This document shows, piece after piece, positions 1-63,879 of a DNA stretch of 64,000 nt. Each line of letters starts with the position of its first letter. Position 1 is the stretch's first letter. The position numbers were made by a program, and so were the translations under genes. Below the pieces are notes generated by a model. It searched no databases and was not told the origin of the DNA. It worked only from the letters and a program-made list of their open reading frames with translations. The stretch comes from Neoechinorhynchus agilis (Eukaryota > Animalia > Acanthocephala), in the NCBI GenBank assembly GCA_051530055.1, contig CM121342.1, positions 12,725,480 to 12,789,479 of the forward strand, in the 5' to 3' direction.

Positions 1-19
1 GAAAATTTGAAGCAATAAA
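1..19 (+). ncRNA. 3' half of a minimal type-I hammerhead ribozyme (cut by window edge) plus AATAAA
   Basis: GAAA-ATTT-GAAGC-AATAAA; positions 1-58 are identical to 53395-53452, where the full motif is visible. Confidence 0.6.
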
Positions 20-492
20 CAAATAAAACACCCATTTTCCGTTCGATAATAAATCTGGGATAAAAAATATCTCAACGTTTTACTAGCTCTTTGGTTACAA
101 TGTTGTTTCTATAAATTCCGAAAGCTACTCTTCGTTAAATCTAGCATATATTTTGGTTTTTACTGTTTGCAAACGTATATCCGACTGTCTTTTTGACATA
201 AATTACGGCTAAAATTAACTATTCTAAAGGCTGAACTTTTGAACATGGAAATCTATACATGCAAATTACCCAGTGTTACTGAAGGGTTTTTATGGATCTT
301 CTTAGACTGATGCGGGTTTTTTTGTGATTGCTGAGTCAGTAACTATAAGAGCCATGGTGCGAGGACGATGAAGAACAGATAAAGGAGAGAAATGCATTTT
401 AGATGAACAATTAATAGAGTTGCATGAAGAAGAGAGCTAAGAAATTATTTGCGTACAATGTGGCAAAGGTTGTTTGATTTAACCAAAATCAG

Positions 493-744
493 TTGCTTGT
501 AAGTTTTCTACAATTTGCTCACTATTTTGTCCCCTTTGGGGTAGAGACGTATGGAGCGCTCGGCAGCTCGGCACTCTCTCTGCTCAAGGATCTCTCGAAG
601 AAATTGAGAGAGGCAACCGGAGACTCAAGAGCAGGCTTATTTCTTCGACAAAATATCTCGCTGGCAGTACAACGGGGCAATGCTGCCAGCGTGATGGCGA
701 CGGTCGAGGAAGGACAAAAGCTGGAATTTGGTGGGAGGTGGTGA
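493..744 (+). mobile_element. 3' fragment of CRE-like non-LTR retrotransposon (REL endonuclease C-terminus)
   Basis: FVPFGVETYGALG...FLRQNISLAVQRGNAASVMAT; same motif as 31960-32469. Confidence 0.8.
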
Positions 745-834
745 ATGTTTAAATGATTATCAAATATATTATTTTTCCCCATTTCATTTGAAGACAATGA
801 TTCTTTGTTTTTAATTGTAGAAAACTTACAAACA

Positions 835-879
835 ATCGCTGAAGAAGATCCGAGATAGTGGATCGAAATATCCAATAAA
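835..879 (+). ncRNA. minimal type-I hammerhead ribozyme (Penelope type) plus AATAAA
   Basis: ATCG-CTGAAGA(839-845)-A-GATCC/GGATC stem II-GAAA(865-868)-TA-TC-CAAT; stem III palindrome ATAT; stem I has one mismatch; AATAAA 874-879. Confidence 0.75.
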
Positions 880-8230: not shown

Positions 8231-8231
8231 A

Positions 8232-9246
8232 TAGCAATAATAACAAAGGATAATCGCGAACCAATATTTTTGTGCCAAAACATTAGTCTCACCGTGCAGC
8301 GGTGAGTGAATTAAATGTTTTGTGGATATAAATTTTATAAAATTTAATAAAATTTGTTTTAACAGGGAAACAATTACCTTATTAAAAAGTATAAGAAGTG
8401 CACTAGGTTACTATGAATTTTGTTCGTTATAAGCTAGGCATCGCTTTTTTGGCCGGTGGCATCTAAATATCGAATAATATTTAATCTATCCGAAAGGCGT
8501 TCAGCTTATTTGTTCTCGCATTATTTATCTGATGGAGACAGTTAATTCAGATTGCCTTTTTAGAAGAAAAATAAAATAGTAAAACGTTTTTTAGATGTTT
8601 TCATTAGCTAATGAAAATCCATCAATCTAGATTTAGCGTCGTCTCTTAGGAACTGGAACGGTCGAAGCGGTGGATAAATACAATCACTTTCAAGCGAAAA
8701 AACGGTCGGTTGGGTCTTTTAGCGCCATACCACATAGGAGGTATCCCTGTGAATAAGTTTACAAACGAGCGAAAATTATAAAATACGCACCCATCAGAAG
8801 CAATCCAATGTCTGAGAACGTTCCAAGCCTAAATTGGATTCCTCTCCCATTCAGGAACACATGGATGAAGAAGGACAGCAATTAAAAACTGTATATGCAG
8901 AAAAAATTGTCTTCAAAAGTTTATCAAAAGAGAAATTAATTTAATTGGTAATTAATTGATAGTTTGATACTAATAAACAAACCGTGATAGCTATCGCGAA
9001 TCTGAAAACATTTTTGGATTCAACGAGTTGAGATGTACAAAATGCTCATATCAAATTTTAGCTCCGCTCCATCTCGGCGAATAAGTTTACAAACAAGCGA
9101 AAATTTACCTAATCAACGAAATTCTCGAGTTATATGCGTTCGTGATACTTCGTTCCAAACTGTGAGCCGCCTTGCTCAAACCTTGTTCTCTGGTTTCCCG
9201 AATTCGAAGTTTGAGAACTTAGTGGAGAAAAGCAGTAATTGACGCC
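8232..9246 (+). repeat. copy A of a 1-kb dispersed duplication (copy B 28110-29130)
   Basis: Direct line-by-line near-identity with a few indels; starts with a CRE 3' end (..QNISLTVQR*). Confidence 0.95.
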
Positions 9247-9576: not shown

Positions 9577-10170
9577 GTGGATGTGAATAGAAATTCGAGG
9601 ACAATTCCTGGGCATAGTTTCCTGTTACGCTCCATAGAAGCAGAGATTCTCAATCTTCAACCGCAAATTTCGATGCTGTGCGAACGTGTTAATGAATTAT
9701 CTTCACACGAGGCTCTGTTCCTGATCAAGAGCACTCTCTTCATTCCAAAATTGTTGTATTAGCTGCGCGCAGCACCTTTTTGGACATAAAGATAGTCCTT
9801 TGTGCGAGCATTCCGATAGCGAGCAGGGACCGGTCAATGGTTGCAAACAATCAGTTTGGGAGAATTACAAACTCTTTATAATTATTGTTGATTTCTTCTC
9901 CCGATAAATAATTTTTCATCAAAAGCGTTTCGATAAACTGGTGATGAACCCCACGAGGTTCGAAAGGTTTTTAATAAAAAATTATTGACCTCTAATCATA
10001 TACCCCCAACTTCGCGGAATCTCCCTTCATTTTCCCGTACACCAACTGACCATGCAACACTCGTGGAGAACCACATGAGTGCTAAGAAACCTTACTCTTT
10101 AAATTCAGATTATCGTGACCCGGTGAACCGAACTCGATTGGCGGCAGCTTTTACAAGAGAATCGGGGACT
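9577..10170 (+). mobile_element. CRE-like fragments
   Basis: LCERVNELSSHEALFLIKSTLFIPKLLY parallels the 27120 region; 9823-9880 and 10097-10170 match 34420-34560. Confidence 0.7.
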
Positions 10171-11794: not shown

Positions 11795-13714
11795 TTTTGT
11801 TGACAATTTACTTGGGAGCATTGTATGCAACGTATCTATGGTAACTAACTTTCCAAATCATTTATGCTACTGCGCAAAATTATTGCCGAACCCTTGACAA
11901 ATAATTAATGTTAAACACCGTTTGGTCTAGTTTTGGATTAAGAGACGTGAATGAGTATACAAATGCATTGACAATAGTCATTAAAAAATTGTATTTAGTC
12001 GAGAAATTAACCCACGTGATACATTTCTGTCGCGATTATTTATCTATTTTGTTTATTCTTCTAATAAGGAGAGCGAGAAAAAGTAAACATCGAAGTTGTA
12101 CTTATGAATCACAAATTTGTATTTCTTTAAGTAAAGAAGTGTTTATTGTTTTCCCTGTTTCTTGGATAAAATACTTAAAATTTTCAATCATTTAAAAATG
12201 CCGTTTACTAGCGTTGTAAAAAACAGTAGTTTACACATTGTATATCATTTATCATGTTACCAAGTAAAAGCACTTCGATGTACCTTTATTTTGTGTAAAT
12301 CTTGAATTATTTGAAGATTTTGTAAAATTAAAATGTATTGAGATCATGAATAATTTTTGACAGCCTTAAAATTTTATACCTTGGAAAATACGCGTCATAG
12401 TATCGTTTGTAGCAATCTACATATTGTTCAAGATTCGGTTATGCATCCTCATTAATCTGTACTACTAATTTTATTCCGCTATTTTTTATGTTTTAAAGTT
12501 TCTGTAGTTCAAATTGTACCGAATTTAATTATAATAATAAAACGTTTCAATAATGAACAAAAAATAGGACACATGTAACATTGGGTCATCGCCTACATTC
12601 CAATTCGTAAACACTCGAGTTTTGATAGGGTAAATGAATGTATCGGTTGATTTTGTAGTGGTTTACGGGGATAGTTTGTGAAGTTTCATCTTTCTTAGCC
12701 TCATTTTGGGTCATGATATCCGAGAAGATTGGGCAGTATAAAAAAGAAGAGGAGCTTCCATATCGAGCTGAATAGCTTCCGCTAATATATCCTGAACTGT
12801 GCTCATCGCTTCAATTAACGAACCCTTTAAAGTTGCAGTAACTCGTAAGTGCAACATCAACAAGATTGGAATACTTGACCGTCTCATTCAATGTTCATTG
12901 ATTTTCATTTAAATGCATTCCTAATTATAAATTAGCACCTGGCGAAAAGATAACGACGAAAAACGCCCAAGCGATCAAAATGCTAATTGCTGACTTCACT
13001 CGCGCGAAAAAGTGAATAATGTCAGCTTACTTGTTTTTGAAGCCACGAGAAAATATTTAGAGCGGTAGATGTGGTGATCACCGGATGCAGGTTAGATAAA
13101 TAACTCGTTTCATTTTAGATTTATGGTCATGTGCAGCTCGAGTTCTTGTAAAATGACTTAAAAACCTCTTTCCAAATGTGTGCGCTCTGAGAATACGCGC
13201 ACTCACTAAAGTACTAGAAGATTTGATTTCAAATTAATTCTTTTTTAAAAACTTTTGTCGTATGTCTCTGAATTTAATCGTAAAATTTTGTTTTAGAAAG
13301 TACTACCAAATTTGTTGAAATTTCTCAAGTTTTCCTCATTTTTTGGCGATCATTTGAAGAATGATAAAGAGAAATGATTTCTGGATTTGGAGATGTGGTG
13401 ATCACCGGATGCAACATATTGAATGGAATGATCTCTCGTGGGACCCCTAACATCATCAGTCATCTAAAAAGACTTTCCCGAACCTCGAGGACGATGATCC
13501 TGCTTGCACGAACCCTAAAATACAACTAAAATCTTTTACGATGGTACAGCCACGTCTCTAACTTTTTGCTTTGTTGTTTATTGGAAATGATTTCATCGTA
13601 ATGACGCAAAAATCTCAAAGCTCTTCGAAAGAATCATAATCGATTTGGTGCTTCTTGAAACCGATATTCTCTGTGTCCAGTATTATTGGAGGACAGATTC
13701 GGCCTTTTTTGTTC

Positions 13715-16700
13715 TTTTCGATTGGCTCGTTGGTGATATTACATCAAAATATACACTATGATATCGCGAGATCTTTTTGTATTGTTACTCGCCTTCGATT
13801 GGCTCGTTGGCGTGATTAAATCAAAATATCCACTATGATATCGCGAGATCTTTTTTAATATATTATGTTTTTTTATTAAATGTCGTTTTTTATTTGATCG
13901 TATTCATAGCGGTCATTTCTATAGTTCGAATCTAAACTTTCTGTACAAACAGATGCGGATTTTGTAACTCGCCTTCGATTGGCTCGTTGGTGCGATTACA
14001 TCAAAATATCAACTATGATATCGCGAGATCTTCTTTTCGATTTAATGTTTAGACATTATTTTTTATCCAAATCATAACAGCTATTAGTACGATGAACTAA
14101 AGTTGAAAATTGATTTGACCCTCTTGTTTAGGTCATTTCCATAGTTCGAATCTCAACATTCTGCACAAACAGATCCGGATTTTGCTACTCGCCTTCGATT
14201 AGATCGTTGGTTATATTACATCAAAATATCCACTTTGATATCGCGAGATCTTTTTTGCCGGTTTAATGTTACTTCTTAGACGTTTTTATCTGAATCATAA
14301 GACCTGTTAATACGCTAAAGTAAAATTTAAAATTAATTTAAATGTCGTTTTTTATATGATCATATTCATAGCGGTCATTTCTATAGTTCGAATCTAAACT
14401 TTCTGTACAAACAGATGCGGATTTTGTAACTCGCCTTCGATTGGCTCGTTGGTGCGATTACATCAAAATATCCACTATGATATCGCGAGATCTTTTTTCG
14501 GTTTAATGTTACTTCTTAGACATTATTTTTTATCCAAATACTTAACAGCTGTTAATACGAATAACCAAAGTTTAAAATTAATTTATATTTCGTTTTTTGG
14601 TCTGATCATATTCATAACAGTCATTTCTATAGTTCGAATCTATGCTTTCTGCACAAACAGATCCGGATTCTGTTACTCGCCTTCGATTGGCTCGTTGATG
14701 TGATTAAATCAAAATATCCACTGTGATATCGCGAGAACCTTTTTGTCGGTTTAATGTTACTTCTTAGACATTATTTTTTATCCAAATCATAACAGCTGTT
14801 AATACGATGAACTAAACTTTAAAATTCATTTGACTCTCTTTTTTTATGTGATCACATTCATAGAAATCATTTCCATAGTTGGAATCTAAACTTTCAGCAC
14901 AAACAGATCCGGATTTCGGTTCTCGCCTTTGATTGGCTCGTTGGTGTGATTACATCAAAATATCCACTATGATATCGCGAGATCTTTTTGTCGGTTAAAT
15001 GTTACTTGGACATTTTTTAGTCCGAATCATAACAGCTATTAATACGATGAACTAAAGTTGAAAATTGATTTGACTCTCTTTTTTTAGGTCATTTCCATAG
15101 TTCGAATCTCAACATTCTGAACAAACAGATCCGGATTTTGCTACTCGATCCAGTTGGCTAGTTGGGGCGATTACATCAAAATATCCACTATGATATCGCG
15201 AGATCTTCTTTTCGATTCAATGTTTAGACTTTTTTATCCAAATCATAACAGCTGTTAATACGATGAACTAAAGTTTAAAATTGATTTGACTCTTTTTTTA
15301 TGTGATCACATTCATAGCAGTCATTTCTATAGTTCGAATCTAAACGTTCTGCACAAACAGATCCGGATTTTGTTACTCGCCTTTGATTGACTCGTTGGTG
15401 TGATTACATCAAAATATCCACTATGATATCGCGAGATATTTTTTGTCGGTTTAATGTTACTTCTTAGACATTATTTTTTTTATCCAAATCATAACAGCTG
15501 TTAATACGATGAACTAAAGTTTAAAATTCATTTGACTCTCTTTTTTTATGTGATCCCATTCATAGCAGTCATTTCTATAGTTGGAATCTAAACTTTCAGC
15601 ACAAACAGATCCGGATTTTGTTACTCGCCTTTGATTGGCTCGTTGGTGTGATTATATCAAAATATCCACTATGGTATCGCGAGATCTTTTTTGTCGGTTT
15701 TATGTTACTTCTTAGACATTATTTTTTATCCAAATCATAACAGCTATTAATATGATGAACTAAAGTTGAAAATTGATTCTACTCTCTTTTTTACGTCATT
15801 TCCATAGTACGAATCTCAACATTCTGCACAAACAGATCCGGATTTTGTTACTCGCCCTCGATTGGCTCGTTGGTGCGATTACATCAAAATATCCACTATG
15901 ATATCGCGAGATCTTCTTTTCGATCTAATGTTTAGACATTATTTTTTATCTAAATCATAACAGCTGTTAATACGATGAACTAAAGTTTAAAATTGATTTG
16001 ACTCTCTCTTTTTATGTGATCACATTCATAGCAGTCATTTCTATAGTTTGAATCTAAACGTTCTGCACAAATAGATCCGGATTTTGTTACTCGCCTTTGA
16101 TTGGCTCGTTGGTGTGATTACATCAACATATCCACTATGATATCGCGAGATCTTTTTTGTCGGTTTAATGTTACTTCTTAGACATTATTTTTTTTATCCA
16201 AATCATAACAGCTGTTAATACGATGAACTAAAGTTTAAAATTCATTTGACTCTCTTTTTTTATGTGATCCCATTCATAGCAGTCATTTCTATAGTTGGAA
16301 TCTAAACTTTCAGCACAAACAGATCCGGATTTTGTTACTCGCCTTTGATTGGCTCGTTGGTGTGATTACATCGAAATATCCACTATGGTATCGCGAGATC
16401 TTTTTTGTCGGTTTAATGTTACTTCTTAGACCTTATTTTTTATCCAAATCATAACAGCTGTTAATACGAATATCCAAAGTTTAAAATTAATTTACATTTC
16501 GTTTTTTGATCTGATCATATTTATAGCAGTCATTTCTATAGTTCGAATCTATGCTTTCTGCACAAACAGAACCGGATTTTGGTTCTCGCCTTTGATTGGC
16601 TCGTTGGTATGATTACATCAAAATATCCACTATGATATCGCGAGATCTTTTTTGTCGGTTTAATGTTACTTCTTAGACATTATTTTTTCATCCAAATCAT

Positions 16701-17995
16701 AACACCTGTTAATACGATGAACTAAAGTTTAAAATTCATGTGGCTCTCTTTTTTTAGGTGATTTCATTCATAGCAGTCATTTCTATAATTGGAGTCTAAA
16801 CTTTCAGCACAAACAGATCCGGATTTTGGTTCTCGCCTTTGATTGGCTCGTTGGTGTGATTACATCAAAATATCCACTATGATATCGCGAGAATTTTTTT
16901 GTCGGTTTAATGTCACTTCTTAGACATTATTTTTTATCCAAATCATAACAGCTATTAGTACGATGAACTAAAGTTGAAAATTGATTTGACTCTTGTTTAG
17001 GTCATTTCCATAGTTCGAATCTCAACATTCTGCACAAACAGATCCGGATTTTGCTACTCGCCTTTGATTAGATCGTTGGTTATATTACATCAAAATATCC
17101 ACTTTGATATCGCGAGATCTTTTTTGCCGGTTTAATGTTACTTCTTAGACGATTTTATCCGAATCATAAGACCTGTTAATACGCTAAAGTAAAATTTAAA
17201 ATTAATTTAAATGTAGTTTTTTATATGATCATATTCATAGCGGTCATTTCTATAGTTCGAATGTCAACATTCTGCACAAACTGATCCGGATTTTGCTACT
17301 CGCCTTCGATTGGCTCGTTGATTATATTTCATCAAAATATCCTTTATGATATCGCGAGATCTTCTTTTCGGTTTGATGTTATTTAAACATTATTTTTTAT
17401 CCAAATCATAAGAGCTGTTAATACGATGAACTAAAGTTTAAAATTGATTTAAATCTCTTTTTTTTATCTGATCACATTCATAGCAGTCATTTCTTTAGTT
17501 CGAATCTAAACTTTCAGTACAAACAGATCCGGATTTTGTTACTCGCCTTCGATTGGCTCGTTGTTGTGATTAGATCAAAATATCAACTATGATATCGCGA
17601 GATCTTCTTTTCGATTTAATGTTTAGACATTATTTTTTATCCAAATCACAACAGCTGTTAATACGATGAACTAAAGTTTAAAATTGATTTGACTCTCTTT
17701 TTTTATGTGATCACATTCAAAGCAGTCATTTCTATGGTTCGAATCTAAACGTTCTGCACAAACAGATCCGGATTTTGTTACTCGCCTTCGATTGGCTCGA
17801 TGAAATCGCGAGATCTTTTTTTGTCGGTTTAATGTTACTTGGACATTTTTTTAGTCTAAATCATAACAGCTGTTAATGCGATGAACTAAAGTTTAAAATT
17901 GATTTAAATCTCTTTTTGATCTGATCATATTCATAGCGGTCATTTCTATAGTTTAAATCTCAACTTTCTGCACAAACAGATCGGGAATTCTGTTA
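13715..17995. repeat. tandem satellite, about 18 units of about 213-248 bp, with higher-order structure
   Basis: Recurrent ACAAACAGATCCGGATTTTG, GATTGGCTCGTTGG and GATATCGCGAGATC anchors at roughly 220-248 bp spacing. Confidence 0.97.
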
Positions 17996-18388
17996 TTTTC
18001 TCCGATGTCCAGATAACGTGAGCCAAATCTCATATTGATATGGAAAATGACAGTTTGAAAAAACGGCAAGGACGCGCGATAGTTCCCCAAAAATAATGAT
18101 TGCATGAAATGTTCTTTTTTAAATTTCTTTATCGACAAATGTTTTCTTTTTCACATCCCCACATCTCAAGCCTTTATATTTCTGTTTTTATAAAGGGGCA
18201 AAAACCGTTAGCCGTTTTCGATGTCAACTACTGCACCCCCACCCACCCCTCGTCTCCGCCGCCCGACATCACTCAAACAGTCCCGCTCGCGCGTTTGTGA
18301 ACAGAAGGAGATTTGGGGTGCAATTAGTGGACGAAGGAACTCTCAATTTCTCTCTCTATGTACCTGCAGAATGTGATTCCCACCCCCG

Positions 18389-20200: not shown

Positions 20201-20253
20201 TCAGCAAGCATGAAAAATTCAATCTTCAAACACTGATAATATCGCATTCTTTT

Positions 20254-44535: not shown

Positions 44536-44539
44536 GTCA

Positions 44540-47500
44540 TAAACACTTGCAATCAATGCCGAGGCCAAAGCACCCAACCACCAAGCTCGTCCCCTGTGAC
44601 ATGGACGATTGTCAGGTTAAAACCCAAATATTCGTCTCAAGTACCTGGATAGCAGGCAGGAAATTCATTTGCGGTTTCTGTGCAGCTGCCTTGCTCAAAC
44701 CTTGTTCTCCGGTTTCCTCCCTTCCCAATAAGTACTTAAACCCTAACCGCTAACAAACCCCCAAACCCCAACCCCTTCCATCTTTAGTTTCCCAACCCAA
44801 ATCTCCTCTTCCTCACTTTATTCTTCAAATACTTTCCACCCACCCTTTGCTGTCTCCGCCCTCCAAGACTCCTCTCCACACTCAAATTCGACTTCTCAAC
44901 AATCTTCTCCCTTCCTTAATTCCGTTCATATCATCCCGCATAACCCTCTTCCCTCGTCCCTGCACTCTAAGTCTCACTCTGCTCCACCATTAAAACCGAA
45001 CCCCCCATCCTCCTCGACCGCATCTTCCCCCACCTCCTCTCTAGCACCCCGTACTGCTAGAAAATACCAGAAACCCCTCCCATCCTTCTACGATTACGTT
45101 TCAACTTTAGCCCCATCAAAACCTACCACCTTCTCTCCTGTACCCCGATTTTCTAGTAAAAAGCACGCACCCCTACCATCCTTCAACGACTACATTAAGC
45201 ATCCCTCGCCTCGTAAATTAACTCCTCCTAAACCTCTCTCATCCTTGCTGCCTAAAACCACTATTCCGCACCCTACCAAATCTGGAAATTTTCGCTTTGC
45301 CCCTCAGAAGCGAAAAATACCTTGGACGCTCACACTACCTCACCTCTTAACACCTCCTTTTCAACTCCCAATCCCGCATGCACAGTTCCCACCCTTATGG
45401 TCCCTACACTCAAATCACACCTTAATACTGTGTCCACCCACGAATCCCTTACCACCGAACTACCCCACCGGTCAACTCCCAACCCTTCTCTCTCTACGCA
45501 GCTTCAACCCTCTCCGTCAGTGTCCATCCCTCATGTCCCTTCTAAACATCCCTTTCCAATAATCTTTTATTCTAACATCCGCAGTCTCCTCCCCAAACTG
45601 GATGAGCTCCATATAGTGGCCTCTTCTTGCAACGCCGACATCCTTGTAATTACAGAAACACGGCTCTCGCCCATAGCAAATTATCTGCCTTCCTTCCAAA
45701 CTTTCAAGCTTTTCACCTCACAAGGGATTTCCGAAACGGGGGAGGCATATCGATCTTCATCCGCACCTCTCTCTTACCATTGCTCTTCACCCTACCTTTT
45801 CATCTCCGACGATCTTGAATGGCTACACATCCAACTTCATTTCCCCCTCCGCAATGGCCAACATGAGATCTCTATCGCTGGCCTTTATCGCCCTCCTTCC
45901 TCAAACATCCCCAACACACTTCAACAAATAGACCGCGATTTGAACAAACTGCCGATCCCGCCCTCGCTCTCTCATATTTCCCAACTCGTTACTTTACCCA
46001 CACGCTTCTCCTCCCGCCTTGATAAAAATTTCTCAAACATCATGCAATACCCGTGCACTACCACGCCTCGTCTGACCATTGTTCCATCCTTCTCTCCCCC
46101 GCATCACCTCAAAAACGTACCTTTCCGACCCCTACGTTGTCTGGGATAAGCGTGACCATCATACCCACGCCTTTGCTGTGTGTGTCAATTCTCTTATCAC
46201 GTAAAACCGCTCTACCATCTTTGGTACCGACCCCTCGATTGCCGTGGGCTCTTTGTTAAATCTAATAGAATCTGCGATGAAGGCCTCCTTTCCTCGCAAA
46301 ACAATACGAATATCGAACCGCGACCCTCCATGGTTCTCGTCTTTTCTAAAACCCTTCAAATCCAGGTAACCAAAGCCTTCCGGTCAGGCAATCCCGCTTA
46401 CCCCTCCCTCCACTCCACACTGACCAAACGCATCCGAATAGCCCGCAAAGTATTCCTCTCATCTCGTCTCTCGTCTGTTCCCAATCGAAACTTTTGGCGT
46501 GAAATAAAAAATGTCACTGGTCTTGGTAGATCCACCCCCTTCGCATCTCTCCACAAATCTGATCTCTCGATCCTCAACACCACGAATAAAAACCTCTGTC
46601 CTCCCCAAACCTCCTCTCAATTGTTCCAACCTCCCTTCTCACTTTCGGACCCGTCCATTCATACATGCCCTTCCTTAGTTTACCCTCTCGAAATCCTAGA
46701 GATCCTTAAACGCCTACTCCGCCGTTCTTCCCCTAATTCGACTATCCCAAATTGGGCCATTCGTTTCATCATCCCGGAACTTATCGATCCTCTAACGCAC
46801 ATAACGAACCTTAGCTTTCTATTGGGCTCTTTCCCATCGTGTCTTAAGGAAGCCCGTGTCGTCCCCCTACCCAAAAACAATAAACGGATTTCCCCCACAT
46901 CCTTTCGTCTCATCTCTATCCTCTCACCTTTCTCTAAAATCTTAGAAAAATGTTTTAAAACCCGCCTACTTCCCTTCTTCCTCAAAAACATCTCCCCTTC
47001 CCAATTCGCTTTCCGTCCCAATTACTCTTGTTCTGATGCCCTCCTCTGCATCTACGATACGCTTGTGCGCAGCTTAGATTCCAATCCAGAATCAATCGTC
47101 CGTCTCGTGCAACTGGATATTTCCAGGGCGTTCGAGTCGGTCGATCACTTTCTTCTCTCCAATCATGTGCTTCTTTTGGCCTCCCAACCTGGCAACTCTC
47201 TTGGATTTCCTCTCCAACCGCAAACAATATATTCAATGTGGAACTTCTTGCTCCTCTTCTCTACCCATATTTAAAGGTATCCTCCAAGGCGCCGTACTTT
47301 CCCCTCTCCTTTTTGACATTTTTCTAAATGACCTTCATCCCCTCACTCCCCCTACCAAATATTTTCTCTATGCCGATGACCTCACAGTCATTATCATCGC
47401 ATCTCCCCCTCTCCCCCCTCTCCGCAACCATGGACGAGCTCAACCATCTCATTTCCTCGCTCTCCACCCTAAACCTCTCCCTAAATTTATCCAAATCTTT

Positions 47501-48050
47501 TGAGCTTGTCCCCCACATTTCCAAACGCAACCTTATCCCCGCGCCTCTCCCTCTCCCCATCCAACGCTCCTCTTCTCTCCGAATACTGGGCCTGATTTTA
47601 CAAGAAAACCTTAAATGGGATGCCCACATTTCATTTACACTCTCTACAACAAACCCTCGTTTTTACCTTCTCAAACTCCTCCGGCGTCTCGGCGTTTCTT
47701 CTAAACACCTTGCACACTTTTATCTCTCTGCCATCCTCCCTATCCCTTCATACGCTTTCCCCACTTTAATCGCCCTTTCCGCCAATGCCCTCCATTCCCT
47801 CGCAACCTTCCACAAGAGAGCAGCGAGAATATGTGGGAATTCACTTCCTCCCCTCGACGCCCACCTCCACTCCATTTTCTCCAAAAACGCCCTCCCTCTC
47901 CTTCAACCCCCTCCACAATTTTCTTCCCTCATCTCTAAATACTCTTCCCTAGTAAACACCCGGAACCCCAACCTTTTTCATCCCCCTAGCTCGTACCACC
48001 CTCTACCAAAAATCCTTTCTCCCCCAAACCCAATCTTTCCTTAACAACAG
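44540..48050 (+). mobile_element. CR1/L2-group LINE (PHD-like ORF1, APE plus RT ORF2), frameshifted
   Basis: ORF1 C..C..FICGFC; EN SNIRSL..VITET; RT LDISRAF, QGAVLSPLLF, YADDL, LRILGL..LKW. Confidence 0.88.
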
Positions 48051-51461: not shown

Positions 51462-53368
51462 ATATCGGTTTCAATTTCAAAGCACGATGTTGATGCTCTT
51501 TGCAAATCGTGCGAGAATTAATTAAACAGTTTTTACGAGTTAAAAAATAAGTTAGATTTGAAATCCAACGGAGAATTTTTAGTTTCCTAACTTTGTTTTG
51601 AGACCATAGAAAATTTCGAGGTAATGCATGGAATGGCAATAAATGGCGTCTGGCTACTATAATATTCATTTCAACAGCCTAGAATTTTTTTAAGGGTTAA
51701 AAGAGTGCTGCCTTCTCGTCATTTTTATTGCATCACTGTAAAATATACGTGCTACGTTAACAATTTCGAGAGCTCAAAGTTCCGATAGGACGACGAAACA
51801 CATTATCCTCCATTGCCTCAAGAATGGACCCAGCATGCTCTTTCTGATACGCACAACTGATTCTCTGATAAAGATAGTTTCAGTCCCTCGATAAATCAGA
51901 AGCAAAAACAACCAAAACGGCATTTGATAAATAAAAAGAGAACACTGGAAACGTAATATCTCTTCGATAGAGTTATCGACCAGTATAGTGACTAATGAAA
52001 GGATACTACCGTTATCAATATGCATGTCATTAGAAACGATTATTTCGTTTGAATTGTGGCGATGATAATCCACAATAAAACGTATTTTATGATATAGAAA
52101 TACGTTTTATGCAACATTATCATGTCCACAATTAAAACTGTATCATCCCGAAGCATTTTCTCTCAGTTATTTTGTTTTTAATTTAATACAATCGACGGTT
52201 CAAAAATTATAAAATTACACGTTGTTCAAGCTTAAAGTTTTACGAAATGGAGAGAGTCACACTATTAACGAGAAAAAGGAAATCAGCCATGAACCTGACC
52301 TCGATCACAGGAGGCAAATCGAAAGGCAAGCAACGTAAAAGATAGCATGCTATTGATTGTAAACGGCTACATAGCATCTAAAACCAAGACATATAGATTA
52401 TTTCCTATATTTTCATTGTTGCATCGCTAAGGGAATGCGATGAGAATCGCTGGATCATAATTTTTATTAAATGCCAATAAGTAACAGTTCTCAAATTGAC
52501 ATTAAGCCTCTTTAAATCAAAAGCTGAGACGATTTATTGCCATCGATCAGTTTGTTAAGCAATGCAATGATTTTAGTTTAGAGCGTTAAGCGACGTTCAG
52601 ATCCATCTTCCTGCTAGGAATAATAGAGGGCTTGATCTAAAATGTGAACATTAGTCTTACGTTATCATCATTTAAAGACGAATCTTGTCTATAGTATTTT
52701 GCGAAAGTGCTGTCATTTCCGATCGAGTTAAATAAGAGAATCATAAGGAGACCCATGCAGAAGAGTGCAAACATCCACATGACAGCGGGAGGAATACTGA
52801 GACCATCGGTTAAAAACAAGCATTGATTGGACTGAAAGCAATTGAAATCGTTGCATTCGTTCTGGTTTTCCTGAAGCTAAATAGAAAAGATTTCGTGAAT
52901 GTTGTTCATCGTAGAAAACATTCTTACAGCGGTCAATAAACGTTTCAGCGATTGAATTTCAGCACAAAATAACTCACAAAGATTGGCATTCTCGTCCATT
53001 TATCGAACTCGAATGTCTGTGTATATATATGGAAACTTAAAAGGTTGGGGTAGTGAATGTCGAAACTATGTCACTGTTATTTTTGATGAACACTGGCACC
53101 ACCAACGTGTGACTCGATCGATGAATGGGGTGGGAGAAATAGAAGGAATGGGTGCGACAGCCGTATGATGTATGTGAGGAGCAAACCAGTTGGTTCCAAT
53201 GACTACAATCAAAGGTACTTAAAAGGGCATTTTAGTGTGATGAGGAGTGAAAACGAAGAATTAGTCTATCCACGAGTCTAGTTCACGTTTGGCAATCGTG
53301 GCATTTTAAAGAGGAAAACGAATTTCCTTTAATAACAAATTTTCGACGCCTTGCGTCTCCGAAGAAAA

Positions 53369-53413
53369 GCTTCCTGACGAAGACGCGAGGCGTCGAAAAT
53401 TTGAAGCAATAAA
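53369..53413 (+). ncRNA. minimal type-I hammerhead ribozyme plus AATAAA
   Basis: GCTTC-CTGACGA(53374-80)-A-GACGC/GCGTC-GAAA(53395-98)-AT-TT-GAAGC; perfect 5-bp stems I and II; AATAAA 53408-13. Confidence 0.9.
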
Positions 53414-54345
53414 CAAATAAAACACCCATTTTCCGTTCGATAATAAATCTGGAATAAACATGAGGGTGTTGGGAAAAAAGGCTTTCCATAATATTCTTTT
53501 AATAACGATTTAAAAAGTGAGTTTGAATACTGTACAACATGTTTAAAACTAACAAAATTCGAATATATGATGCTCATCAATCAACATCCAAAATATGGTA
53601 AATTGAAGAAAATCCACAAAAAACATTGTTCAAATGAATAAGAAATTCGACATTTTCAAAATTCAACCGATCCAAGTCTCCTGCTAACCTCGCTTTTTGT
53701 CTAGTCAATTAAAAGTCAATAAACCAGTTAAGCGTTAATTGATTTCTGAGCACATATAAGATTATAATTTGACATGTTTGATTAATGCGAAATCAAAATG
53801 ATACTCAAAAAAGCATAGGCATTCAATGATAATAGTAAAGATATCGATAGTCAATTGAAATTACTTCGACTTATACCATCAACCCGCTTAGATTTAATAC
53901 ACGAAGCAGAATCACAATATGTGAGTCCGCGGCCAAAAGTCGAAATTATCTAAATGAGAGCCGTTAATGGTAAACGGTGTACGATGCAATTAAATGTCAG
54001 ACTTTTTGATCCCAAGAACAAAGCCGTAATTGATATTTCGATTGATATACTAGTTCGAACTTTAATCAATTTTATCTTTCATATCAATCTTGCCTGAAAA
54101 AACACGATCCATCAAACTAAGTCGTACACTACGAGAGTTTAAAATGTGTGCATCACTAACAAGTATTTTGCGAAACTGAAATATCATACACAAAGTGTAA
54201 AGAAATCTATATTGTGATATTTAAACGGTTGGCGACAAATCTTGCATTAGTTTATTAAGACGGAAAAAAAGAACCAATGGAATAGCTTCAGACTACGCAG
54301 TTAATTCCTGAAAGTTCGCACTGCATTTAATTAGAGACAATAGTC

Positions 54346-54803
54346 CGGATAGAAAATATTTTATTGAATTGGGATAAATCGCGAGGAAGCTTCATCTCCT
54401 GACGATCGATTAATCGATTACACTGTAAATTCCAGACGGTTTACACTTCTAAGTTAGAGATGTGGTGATCATAACAATCCGGGTAGAAAATATTTTAAGG
54501 AACTGAGATATCTTGCGAGGAAGCTTCACCTCCTGAAGATCGACTAAATCGATTACACTGTAAATTCTGGACGGTTTACACCTCCTCTAAGTTGGACATT
54601 TGGATATGTCATTCGCGGATAGAAAATATTTTATTGAATTGGGATAAATCGCGCGGAAGCTTCATCTCCTGACGATCGATTAATCGATTACACTGTAAAT
54701 TCCAGACAGTTTACACTTGCGCTGATTTGGAGATGTGGTGATCAAAATCCTACGGATAGAAAATATTTTATCGAACCGAGATATTTATAGAAGAAGCTTC
54801 GGA
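54346..54803. repeat. about 135-bp tandem repeat, 3.4 units, alternating (dimer of about 270 bp)
   Basis: CGGATAGAAAATATTTT anchors; CTGANGA at 54399, 54533 and 54669. Confidence 0.92.
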
Positions 54804-55051
54804 GACCTATTTTAAAATTTTAAGGGGATGGGGTTCAGTTTATAGGTATGAATTGAATCAAATGGTATTCTGCCGAAGTTGTCTATAAAAATCCTTCGAA
54901 TGCTTTAGACTAAATGGTTCGCATAAACTAAAAGCGAAAGAAGCGGTATAGAAAACATTAGGAGAAATTCGTTACAATAACGTTTGCGTGAAAACCGGAG
55001 AAGATATGCCCATAATCGCCGAATTAATAGTGGGCATGTGCACTAATTTTT

Positions 55052-55258
55052 GTTTGTTCATGGCGGAAAAAGTGAAGGAGTTTGATTAAATCTGATATTT
55101 CTGGGCACAAAATTGTGCCTTTATCGAACTCTGCGAAAAACAGCTTCTAAACTTTCTCTCTTATGTTGAAAGAATTTATAACCTTGATAAGGCTTAATCT
55201 TGTATGCGGAAATATCGGATTTAATAAAATTCCTTCAATTTTTCCGCCATAAACAAAC
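55052..55258. mobile_element. MITE-like element, family 1, upstream of POLR3C
   Basis: TIRs GTTTGTTCATGGCGGAAAAAG.. / ..TTTTTCCGCCATAAACAAAC. Confidence 0.7.
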
Positions 55259-55494
55259 GTGAATATAATTCAATCTTCGAACGTACTAATTTTTAATGGG
55301 TAATCGACCCCGCGCTTATTTGGCAGTGCCACTAGCGATTCTGCATTTCCAATATTATGTGGTAACGTTATTATTTATGAATCGCAAGGGAATACGAAAG
55401 CTACTTGCTGAATATCATCAATAAAGCTCACCAGAATCCCCCTGTATTTCTTTGTTTATTCGGTATGTTCTAAATCTGGAAACGTTTCGTTCAG

Positions 55495-57262
55495 ATGTCT
55501 AAAGAATCAATTTCCGACCTAGCGATCGTGATCGTCCGTCTATACTACGGCATCGTAAATGCGGACTTGATCTCGGTTTTGTGCCGACGGGGCACCGCAA
55601 CGATGAACGACATTGAACAAGAAATGAAGCGATCGCATCAAGACATAAAAGCTATACTAGCAAATCTTATACGCTACCGGCTAATACGATTCAGTACTAC
55701 TGCTCCCATTCTATATAGACTGGACTTAAAAATGATATACCGCGTTCAATGCTTCACGAAATATTCTCAAATAGCTGGACGCTTTTTCGGAAAAACGGGA
55801 TCCTCTATTGTATTTGCAATCGCCCTTAGTGGGATCACAAGTAAAGATATTATCTTGGACGAAGTGACAACTGCGTTAAACATAGACAAGCAACTTGGCA
55901 ACAATGTTTTCGATAAAATGGTTCAAAGTGGGTATTTGAAAGATATGGCTTGTGGTCACATGTACCATCTAAACTGCGAACAATTCGAACATATTCAATT
56001 TCTTGACGAGATTGTATCGTGTCATGAGAGACAGTTCGGTTCAGTTGTAGCTTCGATTGTCAAAGCAATCGCTAGGATGGGCGTTTCCCTTGAAATATGT
56101 TTGGTTCGTAATGCCACTTTGTCATTTAGATCAAGCGCCTCCGAAATGTTGCAAACATCAAAGATCAAACTATAGAACGAACCTGAATAGTAATTTCTTG
56201 CGAACTATTTGAACAGTTCGTCGATTGTCGACTGATTTCTCCACCACTTGTTCTCCTTTTGATTTGTGTTATTTTACCACCTTACGCGGTTAAAACAAAT
56301 TTATTTTAGAACGAGTATTTCGGATTGCACGACCTGAAGAAGGAGTAAAACTCCGAAATATTGGCCCAAAATAAAGAATTTCGTTTCAATCACGTAAAGT
56401 GCCGAACTAACGGCCAAGCGTTGACTGAAAGAGATATTCTTCTCAACCTCTGTGCTGTACAATTCTATAACCATTACGGATGCGCTTGACTTACTGCCGC
56501 TGAGATATTAGATGAATTACGGAGCAGCGACGTATCCTTGCAGCAAATAGAAGAAGCCCTAAGCACTTTATCAAGAGACCGGTTTTCCAATATCGAACGT
56601 GACATGGACGCACAACGCCCAAAGTATCATATATCGATGAACCCATCACAACTTTTCTGCGACAATCTCCATAATTTTCTTGTTAAGAAATATGGCCAGC
56701 CTTCGGCTCAAATCGTAAGCACTATTCGCGCAAACAAGCGACTTCAACAAGATAAAATCAGTCAATTTGCACTGATCGATATACCAACAAGCAGTAGACT
56801 GCTGACAACTTTGTTTCGGGATCAAATCATTAGAATACACGAGTACCCACGATTCCGAACCACTGATTTGGTTCCTCAAAAGTGTGAATACTACTTCAGC
56901 GTAGCTCAGTCTTGTGCAAGGAATGTGATCATTTGCAAAAGACCGAGAGAGACGATTCCAATGTTGCAAACGTTCTTTTGAACATGCTTTACAAATCCGT
57001 CGCCAATATGATGGCGTTTATAGAATTTCTGCTGGACACCATCACAGCCGCCGGGCGGATTCAGTCACTTGTCGATAAGGAGTTTGAGTTGGAGCAGTTG
57101 AAGGGCAACTTGGATGATGGCAGTTACGAGCTTTGCGAAGGAGATTTGAAGTTACTAGAAGAGTTTTGGAGGAGGTTTCAAAAGTTAAGGGTGAGTTCAT
57201 GCGAAATCGCGCCTTTGATTGTCATAGTAGAGCGGTACTTAGAGCACAAGCAAAAAATATAA
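55495..57262 (+). CDS. POLR3C: RNA polymerase III subunit RPC3/RPC62-like
   Basis: N-terminal winged helix LAIVIVRLYYG..LIRYRL; KKYGQPSAQIV..QQDKISQFALI; LYKSVANM; 41-nt intron 56901-56941 restores frame; exon structure 56085-56490 unresolved. Confidence 0.75.
56330..56375 (+). ncRNA. minimal hammerhead motif with decayed stem I plus AATAAA, inside the POLR3C locus
   Basis: CTGAAGA(56334-40)-A-GGAGT/ACTCC-GAAA(56355-58)-TA-TT; stem I pairs only 2 of 4 (CGAC/GGCC); AATAAA 56370-75. Confidence 0.65.
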
Positions 57263-57831
57263 CCAATGCAACGATGCTAGTGAAAGCAATGCCTCGAATG
57301 CATTCGCAAATGTTTCTATGATTCGGTAGTGAGACCTAACCAACCAAATATCGTGAACGTTCGCTTCAGTTAATATTCTGTTTCTCTTCTGTGGCTGAAT
57401 CCGTCGTCCTCCAATTAGGAAAACAAAAATTATTGTTTACCACACTAAATCGCAGTTTCATGTTTTAGGACAGGCGTTTAATTTCACGTTCGTTTTTGTT
57501 ATGTTTTAAAAACCTGATCAAAATAATTGTTCGTAGCCTCAATGTTAAATTAGCGGTTTTCCGCACAGACTTGTGCAGAGTAATGTTAGAGGAGGTTTTA
57601 TTCAATCTTCGTTTAGTTTTAGATCGAGCAAGATTCTATATTTCGCGATAACAAAAATCCGATATGTGCGGTGAATAAAAATGCGAACACAAAACTATGT
57701 TTGAAAAATAGAAGATGGTTAGGTTAAAAAAATTAAATAGAAAACTAATACTAAAATTAGAGGATTTGTAAATATTCGCAATAGCGGAAAATATAGAGTA
57801 TGTGCAAAATAAAAAATATAACAATAATCCA

Positions 57832-58398
57832 TCATCCTTTTTTCTTTCTATTAAATGACTTATTTTTTCGACTAATGTTTCGCTTGTATCCTAGATGTTT
57901 AGCGTTCTCGTTGCGTTGCTTAATAACCTTTGTCAAAAGTTCAGTTTTTAGATGATCTTGCGCTTGTTTGAGAGCATCATTCGCACTTGTGGGTCTATCG
58001 TTCAATTTACATCTGCATAACTTGGCCAAAAACTCTCGGACTTCTTCGGGAGAACGTGGTTTCTCTAATCGATCCTCCATGACGCGGCGATTACTATCCA
58101 CTCCCAAGTATACTGGAACACGATTGACTTTGAACCTTTCAGCAGCCTTGGGTATCTTTGTGACATCCACCCTAACCAAATGAAAACCACATGGATCATT
58201 CGTGATACACTCCGATACCCATTTAGAATAAAAATCGATTATAAAAGGAGAACCAAAGATCTTAGAGGATACAATATCGTGAAACTCATCGGCACTCTGG
58301 GGGTTAAAGATGTTTACTTTTTTCCCGATAGATTTTATCGCGTCTTTTCGCAATTTGGCTCTCTGTTCTGATCGCCTCGATTTCCGTTTTAGGTCCAT
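57832..58398 (-). CDS. thioredoxin-fold protein lacking CxxC, with basic termini
   Basis: PFIIDFYSKW, LVRVDV, AERFKVNRVP match the Trx pattern; WVSEC at the active-site position. Confidence 0.55.
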   Translation of the reverse strand: MDLKRKSRRSEQRAKLRKDAIKSIGKKVNIFNPQSADEFHDIVSSKIFGSPFIIDFYSKWVSECITNDPCGFHLVRVDVTKIPKAAERFKVNRVPVYLGVDSNRRVMEDRLEKPRSPEEVREFLAKLCRCKLNDRPTSANDALKQAQDHLKTELLTKVIKQRNENAKHLGYKRNISRKNKSFNRKKKG

Positions 58399-58691
58399 TT
58401 TAAATGCTTGATAAACGGTTATCAATTAGCTCGCCTGTATTTCAGTTGGGTCACAATAATGGTTGTTATGGTGACGGGACTATATCATGCCGTCTGAATA
58501 ATATAAGAATGTAAGGACGAAGAAGAGTAGAACGATATTGCAAATGAAGTGCATAACGGAGCAGTTTAAGAGTAGTGTGCGATCGAAGGAATCTCTTCTT
58601 CTAGGTTTCAAAAATCTAAAAATTATAGCCTAGTCACATTATACGTTCACACTATAAAATTACTTCTTCTCACATATACAGCGAAAAGTAG

Positions 58692-60401: not shown

Positions 60402-61691
60402 AGTTTTGCCGTCTACAAAAGAATATTTTAGCTGCACTAGTAAATGTTGAGCTCTCGTGTGTACGTATGTTTTTATTCGTGAGTTACTCACCTTCAAATG
60501 GAAGGATGGGCGAGCCTAGGAGGTTTTTTAACGAGAAAACAATAAAAACGGGCTAGGTTTTTATAGAGATAAAAGTGCGAGGAATGAGAAATCGTTTAGG
60601 CGCATGCGTTTGCTTCAATGGAGGCAAGAGAGGGATATGCGAAGCAAGTGCCGATAAGCAATTTGACGAGCACGATGCCTACAAGGCACGACGAGAAGTA
60701 GCGTGAACGTGGTAGAGATGTACTTTATCCCATTTTTGGTATACAAGTGATAATGATACTTAGAACGCGTACGGATTTTGAGATTAATCCATTTACTACC
60801 ATGATCCATAATGGGGATCATTAATGACATCCTACTGGAACTTATAAAGGTCTTCTTCCCATGTCTTGGCCGCAGATGGAACTCCTATGTTGTTTAAAGT
60901 GCCGGGTTCCCTGTTATGTGGATCATAGTAATTGATAGGGTTAAAGAGAACTCACGGCTTATTTGCTCGGAAGTGAAGCCAAATTGAATATAGCAGTAGG
61001 CTTTACATGACTTTTTATTTTTCGGGTTGATAAAAAGCTACCACCGATCAAGTGTATCATCGTTTCAAATGCGTTCAAGATCCAGACAATCACTAATACG
61101 CAATGTTATGGTCCAGAATCTTCAGTAGACCATGCTTATGAAGGAGTTAGGAATGTCTAGGTACTGTCGACGAAATAAGGCATTTATGTGCTGTGGAAAT
61201 GGTCTCAGCAGAAAGTATGAGCTAAGAGCGCACGATGATGGCTTTGCTGCCTATTCGTAAATAATTGAACGGTCTTTTAAAGGTCCAATTACGGTTCATT
61301 CTATTGAAACATCAAGATTTATCGATCCGTTGTCCTATTCCGTCATATTGACAAGTTACTAATTCTGCAGAATTGCGCCTATCCGTTACCATCAACATTT
61401 TCACCTCATTTCAAAAGAAAACATTGCGTCTCAAACTACTTTTAGAAAATCTCAGGAAAGACTCATTTTGAATCATGCCTCAAGAAAGACACACCGTTTT
61501 CCTATGATCTCAAATACCAAGAGATCTAATAATTCGCGTAAGCTGCAAAGCTTAAAATTAACCACTGCATTCATTGTGGATTCCTGGTCGGATCGATATC
61601 TGGACCAACTGTTTATCTTCAATTCTGAAATAAACATAAATTCGTAAATGATTTGATTGTGTCTTTGATTTCAATCGGGGGGAATTCCAAT

Positions 61692-61889
61692 TTATTGATA
61701 GTTGCAACCTTATTTACCTCCCCGATGACTGATTTATACGAATTTTCGTCAATCCCGGGCACCTGAGTTCTGCCCAAGCTACACTCACCATGTACTATTC
61801 TAGATGCCTGAAGAGGTCTGTATGCAGACGAAAATTCGTACAAATAAATCAGTCATCGGGGAGGTTAATAAGGTTGCAACTATCAATAA
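61692..61889. repeat. inverted repeat (about 60-bp arms) overlapping the hammerhead
   Basis: 61692-61750 is the reverse complement of 61827-61889 with one mismatch and a 4-nt gap. Confidence 0.9.
61804..61848 (+). ncRNA. minimal type-I hammerhead ribozyme plus AATAAA
   Basis: TGC-CTGAAGA(61808-14)-G-GTCTG/CAGAC-GAAA(61830-33)-AT-TC-GTA; stem I 3 bp including G.U; AATAAA 61843-48. Confidence 0.8.
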
Positions 61890-63830
61890 TATAAATGATT
61901 TGAGTAAATATTAAGCTACTACTTGAACGATCACCGATATATACTGATGTTAACAAATAATCTGTAATAGATGAATTAACCGCAGAGCAAATTATCATCT
62001 GGGCTTTTAATCTGTCTAAAGGTACAAGCAAATAAATAATCGTTAAGTCAAAAAAGGTGAGGTCGGAAAATGATGAAACGTAAATATTACACTCATTTTC
62101 TTAAATTGGATAAAAGAAAAAGAAATTTGGAAAAATCTTAGCCTGCCAAGTAAGAAAAATCTTTTAGTTTGTAACCAAACGAAGTTGGGATTAAAAAAAA
62201 TTAAAAATTGTTAACTACATCCATCTAAATTTTATACAAGGTCCCTTCCATATTCGTTTTTATAATCAAAGAAAAAGCAAACATCAAGGAATTTTGTGGA
62301 TGTTCCAAGTGCTTTTGTATTGACTATCGGTAACTTGCGTTGTTTGCACGTTCTAAAAGCTGTTGGTTTCTCTAATTACTAAACGAACTATACAATGTAT
62401 TCGAATGAGTCTTTTGTTTTCATCAAGACGTAATTCACGTTGTGAATGGCGACCTAACATATGCTCAGAATTCTTATTTACTTTGATTTATAGGAAAGGA
62501 TGATGGAATTTTTGCGTTATAAGGATTTGCACAGTAAATTCATTCGAGCAAGCCTTCATTAATCAATCCCCATGAACACGAGTAAAATTCATCAGGAGAA
62601 ACCAAAGGTTACTCGTCCTGCCCTCTACTAAACTTTACTGGAACGGAGGAGTAACTCTAAAGAGAGCCAATGTTTTGTATCACCTGAATAATTAGAGAAC
62701 ATTGAAGATCGAGCATCAGCATTGAATGCGTTCGAATTTACGCATTCTATCGCTGTTTTTTCCAGTTTGATAAACAAATCACGGTTCAATAATTTGCACT
62801 AGTATACATACGGCTTAGGATAAAATACACTAAAATCGGAGGAAATTAAAAATCGAACAGTCTATGAAGAAAGATTAGGAGTTTTCAAAAAATCTCACCC
62901 TAGATTATCAAAAGTCACGCTATTAGGCGATTATTTGGGTTATTTTATTTTCCAGATTAGTTTCTACATGAATGTCTCCCATTTGAGTCATAGTGTAAAT
63001 AGAATTGCGAGAATCGGTAAAGAAGGAAACAGTTGTGTGTTTACTTGTAAAATATCAGAAGAAATTTTTACGATCTTCCGCAGTGCTCAGGAAACTCATA
63101 ATAATCTATAAAGTTTTGTAGAATAATAACACGTTTATTTGTTTGTTAGATAACAAGAATTGTACCCACTTAATTTTGGGTCCTCATTGTGGCATTGTTT
63201 TCGATGACGATAGGATAATTGTTATTTAAGCGATAAACAATATTGGTTTGAAACTATGGAATGCGGATTTGTTGAGGTCGGGCGAAGTTTGTTCGGGTGG
63301 GGATTGGTGGTTATTGTTTGCAGGAGAGTTTGTGAGGTTGGTACAGGTCAGTCGTTGTCATCATTTGCGTCCACCGGTTTTAGGTCTGAGAAGAAAAACG
63401 AGTACGTAGGAATTATGATGATGTGACGTCATTGTGCTGTTAGGACGTTTTTCAAACAGCGAGTTCAAATAAAAATTAACCTTAATTGATTCGTCGGAGC
63501 GCCGATGGGGCAGAAACTGTGGCTGGTTGTGTGTTGAACTGTGACTGACATTTACATTTGCCCTTGGACGCAGAGCACGGTCGAGAAAATGCCTTGAACT
63601 AGAACATTTAAATGGAACATTCATCAAGTGAACACTCGCAGAATGTTGTTTTTCGCAAAAAATGATTCTTGGACAGAGTACTCGTTGGTGTTTTGTTAAC
63701 TTCTCCGAAATTTCCGACAATTCTAATCTTTAAGATTTGGAATTCAACGTAAAGACCTACATTAAATTATAGTTAAAGATAAAATCCATGAGTATGTGGC
63801 GGTGGGGGAAAAATTATATCAAAGAATCAC

Positions 63831-63879
63831 TTTAATCGAAATATTTCGCCCAATCACACTGGACTTCTTCAGTCAATTA
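63831..63879 (-). ncRNA. minimal type-I hammerhead ribozyme plus ATTAAA
   Basis: Minus strand TAATTGA-CTGAAGA-A-GTCCA/TGGGC-GAAA-TA-TT-TCGATTA; 7-bp stem I and 5-bp stem II, each with one G.U. Confidence 0.85.

Follow-up and report, generated by a model that had tools for sequence, protein, structure and literature searches.

What are the small hammerhead ribozymes which lie scattered over animal DNA, each directly followed by a polyadenylation (poly(A)) signal and most of them without a coding region beside them? The question is raised by a stretch of 64,000 nucleotides (nt) from the acanthocephalan Neoechinorhynchus agilis (assembly GCA_051530055.1, contig CM121342.1, positions 12,725,480 to 12,789,479 of the forward strand; this whole stretch is called the window below, and all positions are counted from its first letter), in which an original prediction, made from the sequence alone, had described seven such cassettes. 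We consider it very probable (roughly 0.85) that these motifs are the 3'-terminal modules of Penelope-like elements (PLEs) or of elements copied by PLE enzymes. The modules share one order of parts, namely a splice-acceptor-like YAG, a short helix I, a minimal type-I hammerhead, a poly(A) signal and then the end of the element, and the local copies are cut off at differing points on their 5' side. This is a known kind of repeat, the ends of dead or truncated PLEs, here in an acanthocephalan. Target-primed reverse transcription would begin close to the 3' terminus of the RNA, and frequent abortion or template switching would leave behind 5'-truncated copies and head-to-head twins holding the module alone. 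The 'solo' cassettes lacking an open reading frame (ORF) would then outnumber the ORF-bearing copies because truncation and twinning keep only the module.

Occurrence of the motif

Both strands of the window were searched with a strict descriptor, consisting of CTGANGA, 0-1 additional nt, a stem II of at least 4 bp, GAAA, two nt, T and a base other than G. Six complete sites were obtained (839, 30008, 53374, 56334 and 61808 on the plus strand and 63872 on the minus strand) and no further match in the window, with predicted cuts after 872, 30039, 53402, 56362, 61837 and 63840, respectively. The partial motif at the beginning of the window (1-64) is 98% identical to 53395-53458, the likeness stopping at 64/65, and by this identity it is classed as the 3' part of a further copy of the 53374 family, clipped by the window edge. 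In 1000 dinucleotide-preserving shuffles of the window the same descriptor found 0.03 sites on average and two at most. When the stem was not required, nine matches to the core remained, which split cleanly into six with a stem II of 5-7 bp and three with 1-2 bp. The census of the original prediction is thereby reproduced in full, with all six complete motifs, the partial one and every cut position in exact agreement; its argument against chance, drawn from stem II sequences that differ between the loci and still pair, holds as well, with 5-7 bp at all six sites and visible covariation. Aligning the six short motifs with MAFFT gave a misalignment.

Beyond the complete sites, a scan allowing one mismatch added a decayed copy at 9938, and a search for the 3' half of the core with its signal, that is GAAA-(AT/TA)-T-H followed within 9 nt by A[AT]TAAA, gave 12 matches where 0.86 were expected. 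The extra matches comprise an inverted arm at 53344 on the minus strand and four aligned members of one family (20114 on the minus strand; 20163, 36938 and 55209 on the plus strand), which keeps the 3' half and the signal without an intact CUGANGA and is called the half-core family here; comparable 'half core' cases have been mentioned by Craig et al. 2021 (PMC8557442). Five relics (9938, 20114, 20163, 36938 and 55209) are thus added to the original list, and the window holds about 13 modules in total, or one per approximately 5 kb. The candidate at 41164 (CTGATGA...GAAA) was discarded as a chance match, having a stem II of 1 bp and no alignment with the half-core family, and the one-mismatch matches at 8344, 13292, 51540 (plus strand), 22252, 36816, 41125 and 62911 (minus strand) look like chance in AT-rich sequence. 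The modules and their coding remnants are the following:

1-64, plus strand: partial 3' end of a 53374-family copy, from GAAA onward, about 37 nt shorter at its 3' end than the 53374 copy
839-879, plus strand: minimal hammerhead, core at 839, cut after 872, AATAAA at 874-879, helix I of 1 bp
9907-9990, plus strand: decayed hammerhead at 9938 (core CTGGTGA, non-palindromic helix III) and AATAAA, with an inverted 27-nt partial copy at 9907-9933
20076-20201, both strands: half-core head-to-head twin (20114 minus, 20163 plus), GAAA-TA-TT and AATAAA on both strands, 54-nt arms of 83% identity
29542-29982, plus strand: putative GIY-YIG endonuclease ORF belonging to a PLE truncated on its 5' side, with 25 nt between its end and the core and 21 nt between its end and helix I
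29998-30050, plus strand: TTTCAG, helix I strand ATCA, core at 30008, cut after 30039, helix I strand TGAT, AATAAA at 30045-30050
36836-36999, both strands: half-core head-to-head twin, plus copy with GAAATATC at 36938, inverted 57-nt arm at 36836-36892
53336-53358, minus strand: inverted fragment containing stem II, GAAA-AT-TT and ATTAAA, joined head-to-head with the 53374 copy, 26-nt arms of 92% identity
53359-53495, plus strand: 5'-truncated 53374 copy, helix I of 5 bp, cut after 53402, end of the repeat near 53495
55060-55258, both strands: half-core twin, very high-copy, whose plus fragment 55205-55258 begins inside the ribozyme (GAAA-TA-TC and AATAAA)
56300-56375, both strands: truncated hammerhead 56333-56375 (plus) without the 5' strand of helix I, and inverted 3' half 56300-56324 (minus), in the POLR3C intron 56126-56490
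61692-61889, both strands: young head-to-head twin, minus arm 61750-61692 from stem II, plus copy 61751-61889 with TTCTAG, helix I, core at 61808, cut after 61837, AATAAA at 61843 and an end about 52 nt past the cut
63831-63879, minus strand: hammerhead core at 63872, helix I of 7 bp, cut after 63840, ATTAAA at 63836-63831
63876-64000, minus strand: C-terminal end of a putative GIY-YIG ORF that continues past the window edge, the core directly adjoining its stop codon (63875-63873)

Architecture of the ribozymes

All six complete motifs have one unpaired base between A9 and 10.1, where the descriptor permitted none or one, and a G10.1-C11.1 pair, where it allowed any pair. Helix III consists of A15.1-U16.1 only, placed around AU or UA, so that every motif carries the palindrome AAUU or AUAU. 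Helix II has 5-7 bp in each, and its positions 10.2 to 10.5 show three or four pair types apiece with no mismatch, a regularity partly built into the descriptor. Helix I, which has about 4-5 bp in the minimal hammerheads of PLEs, varies from 7 bp (63872) over 5 bp (53374), 4 bp (30008) and 3 bp (61808) to a single pair (839 and 56334). Unconstrained folding returned both helices I and II for 30008, 53374 and 63872, helix II alone for 839 and 56334, and a misfold for 61808.

The extra base at A9, the G10.1-C11.1 pair and the palindromic helix III are the published hallmarks of the minimal hammerheads of PLEs. According to Cervera & de la Pena 2014 (PMC4209133), such ribozymes occur mostly as single motifs, 'probably related to truncated PLEs', have a short helix I beside a long helix II and form many sequence families rich in compensatory changes; they were also treated by Lunse, Weinberg & Breaker 2017, as cited in PMC6765202. 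The likeness comprises the type-I order, the CUGANGA and GAAA cores and a 1-bp helix III whose palindrome implies dimers, as well as the many families per genome, the mostly single copies and the site behind a GIY-YIG ORF near the 3' end of the element. The differences are the poly(A) signal close behind the cut (see below) and the host, N. agilis being outside the species covered in PMC4209133 and PMC6765202. Within the same phylum, hammerhead-bearing Neptune and Penelope/Poseidon families have been catalogued in Pomphorhynchus laevis (Craig et al. 2021, PMC8557442). For PLEs the same study describes copies that are often 5'-truncated, a truncated copy lying inverted beside them, and a tail of 30-40 bp that is optional. 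The ribozymes, the 5' truncation and the inverted neighbours of these endonuclease-bearing PLEs have their counterparts in the window, whose copies differ in being extreme truncations of 50-200 nt.

Coding remnants of Penelope-like elements

The ORF at 29542-29982 (147 amino acids) matches the Pfam family GIY-YIG (PF01541) with an E value of 1.4e-4 and 22.5 bits, and in the Atlas it resembles GIY-YIG clusters of eukaryotes (score 0.92). Residues 109-133 of this ORF are matched by 63995-63921 in tblastn (48% identity over 25 residues, E 1e-3), and translation shows that the stop codon of this frame, which lies before the 63872 ribozyme, touches the core. The earlier claim that two copies abut GIY-YIG ORFs is therefore true of 30008 and 63872 by Pfam, tblastn and translation, and not of 839; together with the hallmarks of the minimal hammerhead, these two ORFs also bear out the link to PLEs that had been drawn. 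The core at 839 lies 95 nt past the stop of ORF 478-741, which was rejected as a PLE, since it forms the tail end of another, abundant and unrelated retroelement.

Used as query in a word-based protein search, the 147-amino-acid endonuclease ORF gave no match, an uninformative blank for so short and diverged a sequence, and ten stop-free pieces upstream of the four ORF-less copies (839, 53374, 56334 and 61808) found no Pfam family even at an E value of 1. On the minus strand, ORF 29063-29335 resembles rotifer proteins, one cluster of which carries RVT_1, and is a weak lead to a PLE reverse transcriptase. The window holds no full-length PLE, and the clade (Neptune or Poseidon) is not assignable from the local copies.

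Truncated copies and head-to-head twins

The stretch 52500-58400 was compared with RNA contigs from three sets and with whole-genome reads from one set, all of N. agilis; single-copy DNA has a read depth of about 14. The 53374 family reaches a depth of about 3100, that is roughly 200 copies at a likeness of at least 90%. Upstream of 53359, 1805 reads continue with a consensus agreement of 93%: the local copy is 5'-truncated at this point and the family extends further upstream. Beyond approximately 53495, 1044 reads continue with an agreement of 67%, which fits the expectation for modules about half of which have more element behind them, as in the tandem, pseudo-long terminal repeat (LTR) layout of PLEs, and half of which are followed by unrelated DNA. 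At 56334 only 56333-56364/75 is common to the other copies, with about 25-fold depth (roughly 25 copies); in the consensus of the family, GGAC stands before 56333 and T at 56365, by which a 5-bp helix I (GGACC/GGUCC) is restored, and the local copy is truncated at the very edge of the core (56333). The half-core fragment 55205-55258 has a depth of about 3300, with loose ends before 55205/55209 and behind 55258. The flanking consensuses of the 53374 and 55205 families as derived from the reads matched no other fragment in the window when three mismatches were allowed.

Inverted-repeat searches revealed head-to-head twins at seven loci (9938, 20114/20163, 36938, 53374, 55209, 56334 and 61808), so that three of the four solo ribozymes (53374, 56334 and 61808) and all five extra relics are twinned. 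The arms are 61692-61750 and 61827-61889 (46-nt arms with 98% and 25-nt arms with 88% identity), 53336-53361 and 53378-53403, 56305-56324 and 56352-56371, and 9907-9933 and 9960-9986; for the 53374 family, joints between opposite strands are also present in the DNA reads. The inverted repeats near 839 (17 nt, 76%) and 63872 (23 nt, 78%) look like chance. Joints between copies in tandem amount to less than 1% of reads: one of 118 nt (53476 back to 53359) is rare in the DNA reads and is contained in one RNA contig, another of 54 nt (55258 back to 55205) is found in reads, both kinds stemming from other places in the genome, and no tandem ribozyme array was found within the window.

From the cut site to the end of the element there are 52-93 nt in the window copies, as compared with the approximately 85-92 nt past the cut at which reverse transcription starts in the Anolis PLE (PMC11167929). 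The fragment 1-64 ends about 37 nt before the end of the 53374 copy near 53495, a shortfall that, in the single pair of copies compared, fits the optional PLE tail of 30-40 bp (PMC8557442; PMC11167929). It should also be noted that every genomic copy spans the cut site, so the RNA template would have been uncleaved there, in agreement with the in vitro finding that ribozyme mutants of the Anolis PLE had no effect on insertion (PMC11167929). One unspliced RNA contig crosses the 56362 cut site uncut; the RNA evidence consists of assembled contigs, which cannot show RNA ends. In published work single minimal motifs showed no detectable cleavage in vitro and dimers cleaved weakly (PMC4209133), a dimer model repeated in a later review (PMC6765202). 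As a monomer with a 1-bp helix III cleaves poorly according to published work, needing dimerisation or the aid of a protein, the solo copies are, by this analogy, most likely inert relics, above all 839 and 56334 without helix I.

The poly(A) signal and the splice-acceptor-like site

At all six sites A[AT]TAAA begins 1-7 nt past the cut; for a random position, the chance that it begins within 20 nt is about 4%. Both common metazoan forms of the hexamer (AAUAAA and AUUAAA) are represented. The 53374 copy has AATAAA at +5, +13, +39 and +50 from the cut. Outside the shared motif the ribozyme families are unalignable with one another, for which reason the hexamer is regarded as a conserved part of the module; AAUAAA is most likely the elements' own polyadenylation signal. 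Within 53408-53417, half of the genomic copies of the 53374 family have a T>G change at 53410 that destroys the first AATAAA, and a similar fraction have a C>T change at 53414 that makes a new one 4 nt downstream. Both changes occur in one contig of the RNA runs X3 and X4, at equal depth and with offsets fitting a single contig. This paired loss and gain suggests that the hexamer is maintained. In the literature on PLE hammerheads that was searched, a poly(A) signal invariably 1-7 nt past the cut is not described.

On the other side of the core, TTYYAG precedes the ribozyme in five of the six families (background about 3.6%), locally at 30008, 61808 and 63872 and, for the 53374 and 56334 families, in the consensus built from the reads. 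It stands exactly 4 nt before the core in three of the families, the four bases between its AG and CUGA being those of helix I. The pattern was defined after looking at the sequences, and these statistics are soft. An intron ending at the 5' end of helix I is known from the Penelope element of D. virilis (Arkhipova 2003, as described in PMC4209133); the pyrimidine-rich YAG directly before the 5' strand of helix I is common to both, the sites in the window being known from sequence alone; the ribozyme of D. virilis differs in that its helix II is bulged and its helix I measures 2 bp.

Alternative explanations

Several observations weigh against an origin from PLE ends. The Rfam hammerhead models gave no match at the gathering score in the whole window and none at E values up to 10 over 52-64 kb, a blank that is expected and not counted against the motif itself since the models need helix III, absent in these variants. 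The GIY-YIG match at 29542-29982 is just under the curated Pfam cutoff of 22.6. No coding remnant of a reverse transcriptase or endonuclease was found by tblastn and Pfam beside 839, 53374, 56334 and 61808, and the parent families of these four copies could therefore be non-coding. The interpretation of the 37-nt difference as a tail comes from one pair of copies, and neither cleavage nor polyadenylation nor splicing was observed at the module sites in the RNA contigs, where ends are not visible. Certain families, 53374 and the half-core family in particular, could be short non-autonomous elements resembling retrozymes or short interspersed elements, containing little beyond the ribozyme module and copied by PLE enzymes, instead of truncated autonomous PLEs. 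Such elements are favoured by a module that measures about 140 nt and exists in roughly 200 near-identical copies, by the tandem joints (118 nt and 54 nt) seen in DNA reads and RNA contigs and by the lack of coding remnants beside four copies, as well as by the argument that retrozymes derive from PLE terminal repeats (bioRxiv 10.64898/2026.07.22.740005). Animal non-LTR retrozymes are tandem units of about 170-400 bp having canonical hammerheads with loop-loop contacts and circular RNAs (Cervera & de la Pena 2020, PMC7229834); the window copies share with them the type-I hammerhead, transcription and, probably, mobilisation by PLE enzymes, but are dispersed, single or twinned and of the minimal variant, with no ribozyme in any tandem array of the window. 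Moreover, most reads of the 53374 family share upstream sequence and about two thirds continue downstream, giving a typical unit longer than the local copy, the tandem joints are scarce, and two copies have endonuclease ORFs. We therefore regard short non-autonomous elements as an unlikely account, to be kept in mind for individual families. A still bolder version, in which the acceptor-hammerhead-AAUAAA-tail module of about 140 nt would be the complete cis-acting unit for PLE enzymes, ultra-short ORF-less elements would multiply to hundreds as twins, and the signal would mark an interplay of splicing, self-cleavage and polyadenylation, appears doubtful and is put forward as speculation.

A service to the host, by which the cassettes would act as 3'-end or RNA-processing signals through ribozyme cleavage and/or polyadenylation of host transcripts, is highly improbable. 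The hexamer is indeed kept right past the cut in all copies, the family is transcribed (RNA contig depth over the 56334 core of 265/411/56, compared with 98/82/44 for the POLR3C mRNA), and a mammalian precedent exists in Clec2, with a hammerhead between stop codon and poly(A) signal (PMC6765202). Yet the only genic copy, 56334, is intronic and spliced out, the unspliced contig passes its cut site intact, helix I is absent in two of six copies, monomer activity has been reported as undetectable (PMC4209133), and the copies are found in twins and beside other transposons, not at gene ends. The RNA-processing role suggested earlier for the ORF-less copies is thus unsupported, since the sole genic copy leaves with its intron. 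The accompanying suggestion of one non-autonomous, ribozyme-defined family is not supported either; these copies belong to several families with only the motif in common, and the reads show the local 53374 and 56334 copies to be 5'-truncated relative to their own families. That the motifs are mere coincidences of AT-rich sequence, for which the missing Rfam hits and the poor helix I at two sites could be quoted, has a negligible probability and is excluded by the shuffles, by the bimodal stem II pairing among the core-only matches, by the excess of the 3'-half pattern and by families that are multi-copy in the reads.

Significance

With the 3' ends of PLEs as the preferred explanation, the analysis adds proof of truncation from the reads, shows twins to be prevalent and describes the half-core family and the strict order of acceptor, ribozyme and signal. 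For annotation, these relics account for a dense class of small repeats (here about one in every 5 kb), which are best masked as ends of PLEs and not taken for genes or regulators. The poly(A) signal 1-7 nt past the cut and the AG at the start of helix I in three families offer a compact and testable picture of a possible course of PLE RNA processing, and read data provide a simple recipe for separating truncated copies from whole small elements.

Other features of the window

The POLR3C-like gene which harbours the 56334 twin has exons at 55495-56125, 56491-56902 and 56950-57190 and Pfam matches to HTH_9 and POLR3C_WHD. It has two unconventional introns. The first, 56126-56490 (365 nt), is skipped in RNA contigs of three runs, has the ends TT..AC and is bounded by 18-nt inverted repeats (56131-56148 and 56472-56489, 89%) in a layout of TA-NN-stem...stem-NN-TA, so that its removal leaves one TA. 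The second, a near-perfect hairpin of 47 nt (56903-56949, ends AG..AG), is skipped as well, and the next intron is GT..AG. For this locus there is also an unspliced contig of low depth, and joints of this kind are absent from the DNA reads. A strongly expressed gene on the minus strand (52527-53035, RNA contig depth about 600-790), with two short GT..AG introns of 50 and 51 nt, lies immediately to the left of the 53374 module.

The abundant retroelement is represented by at least seven copies in the window (478-741, 8231-8302, 26717-28180, 31855-32466, 34446-35213 and, on the minus strand, 39930-40049 and 42671-42870). It is not a PLE and matches no Pfam family, its conserved C-terminal tail reads VETYG...QRGNA, and the clusters resembling it in the Atlas are eukaryotic and unnamed; apart from the adjacency at 839, a ribozyme follows none of its copies. 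Behind the end of its ORF lie two copies of about 1 kb (8232-9200 and 28110-29084, 86-99% identical), probably its 3' untranslated region, the second of which abuts the PLE fragments at 29063-30100. A satellite array at 13700-18000 (about 4 kb, period of approximately 246 nt, 14-18 copies of 60-98% identity) contains no hammerhead motif, and the region 44000-48000 is characterised by a strong excess of C over G (GC skew of about -0.5) and by long proline/serine-rich open frames on the plus strand.

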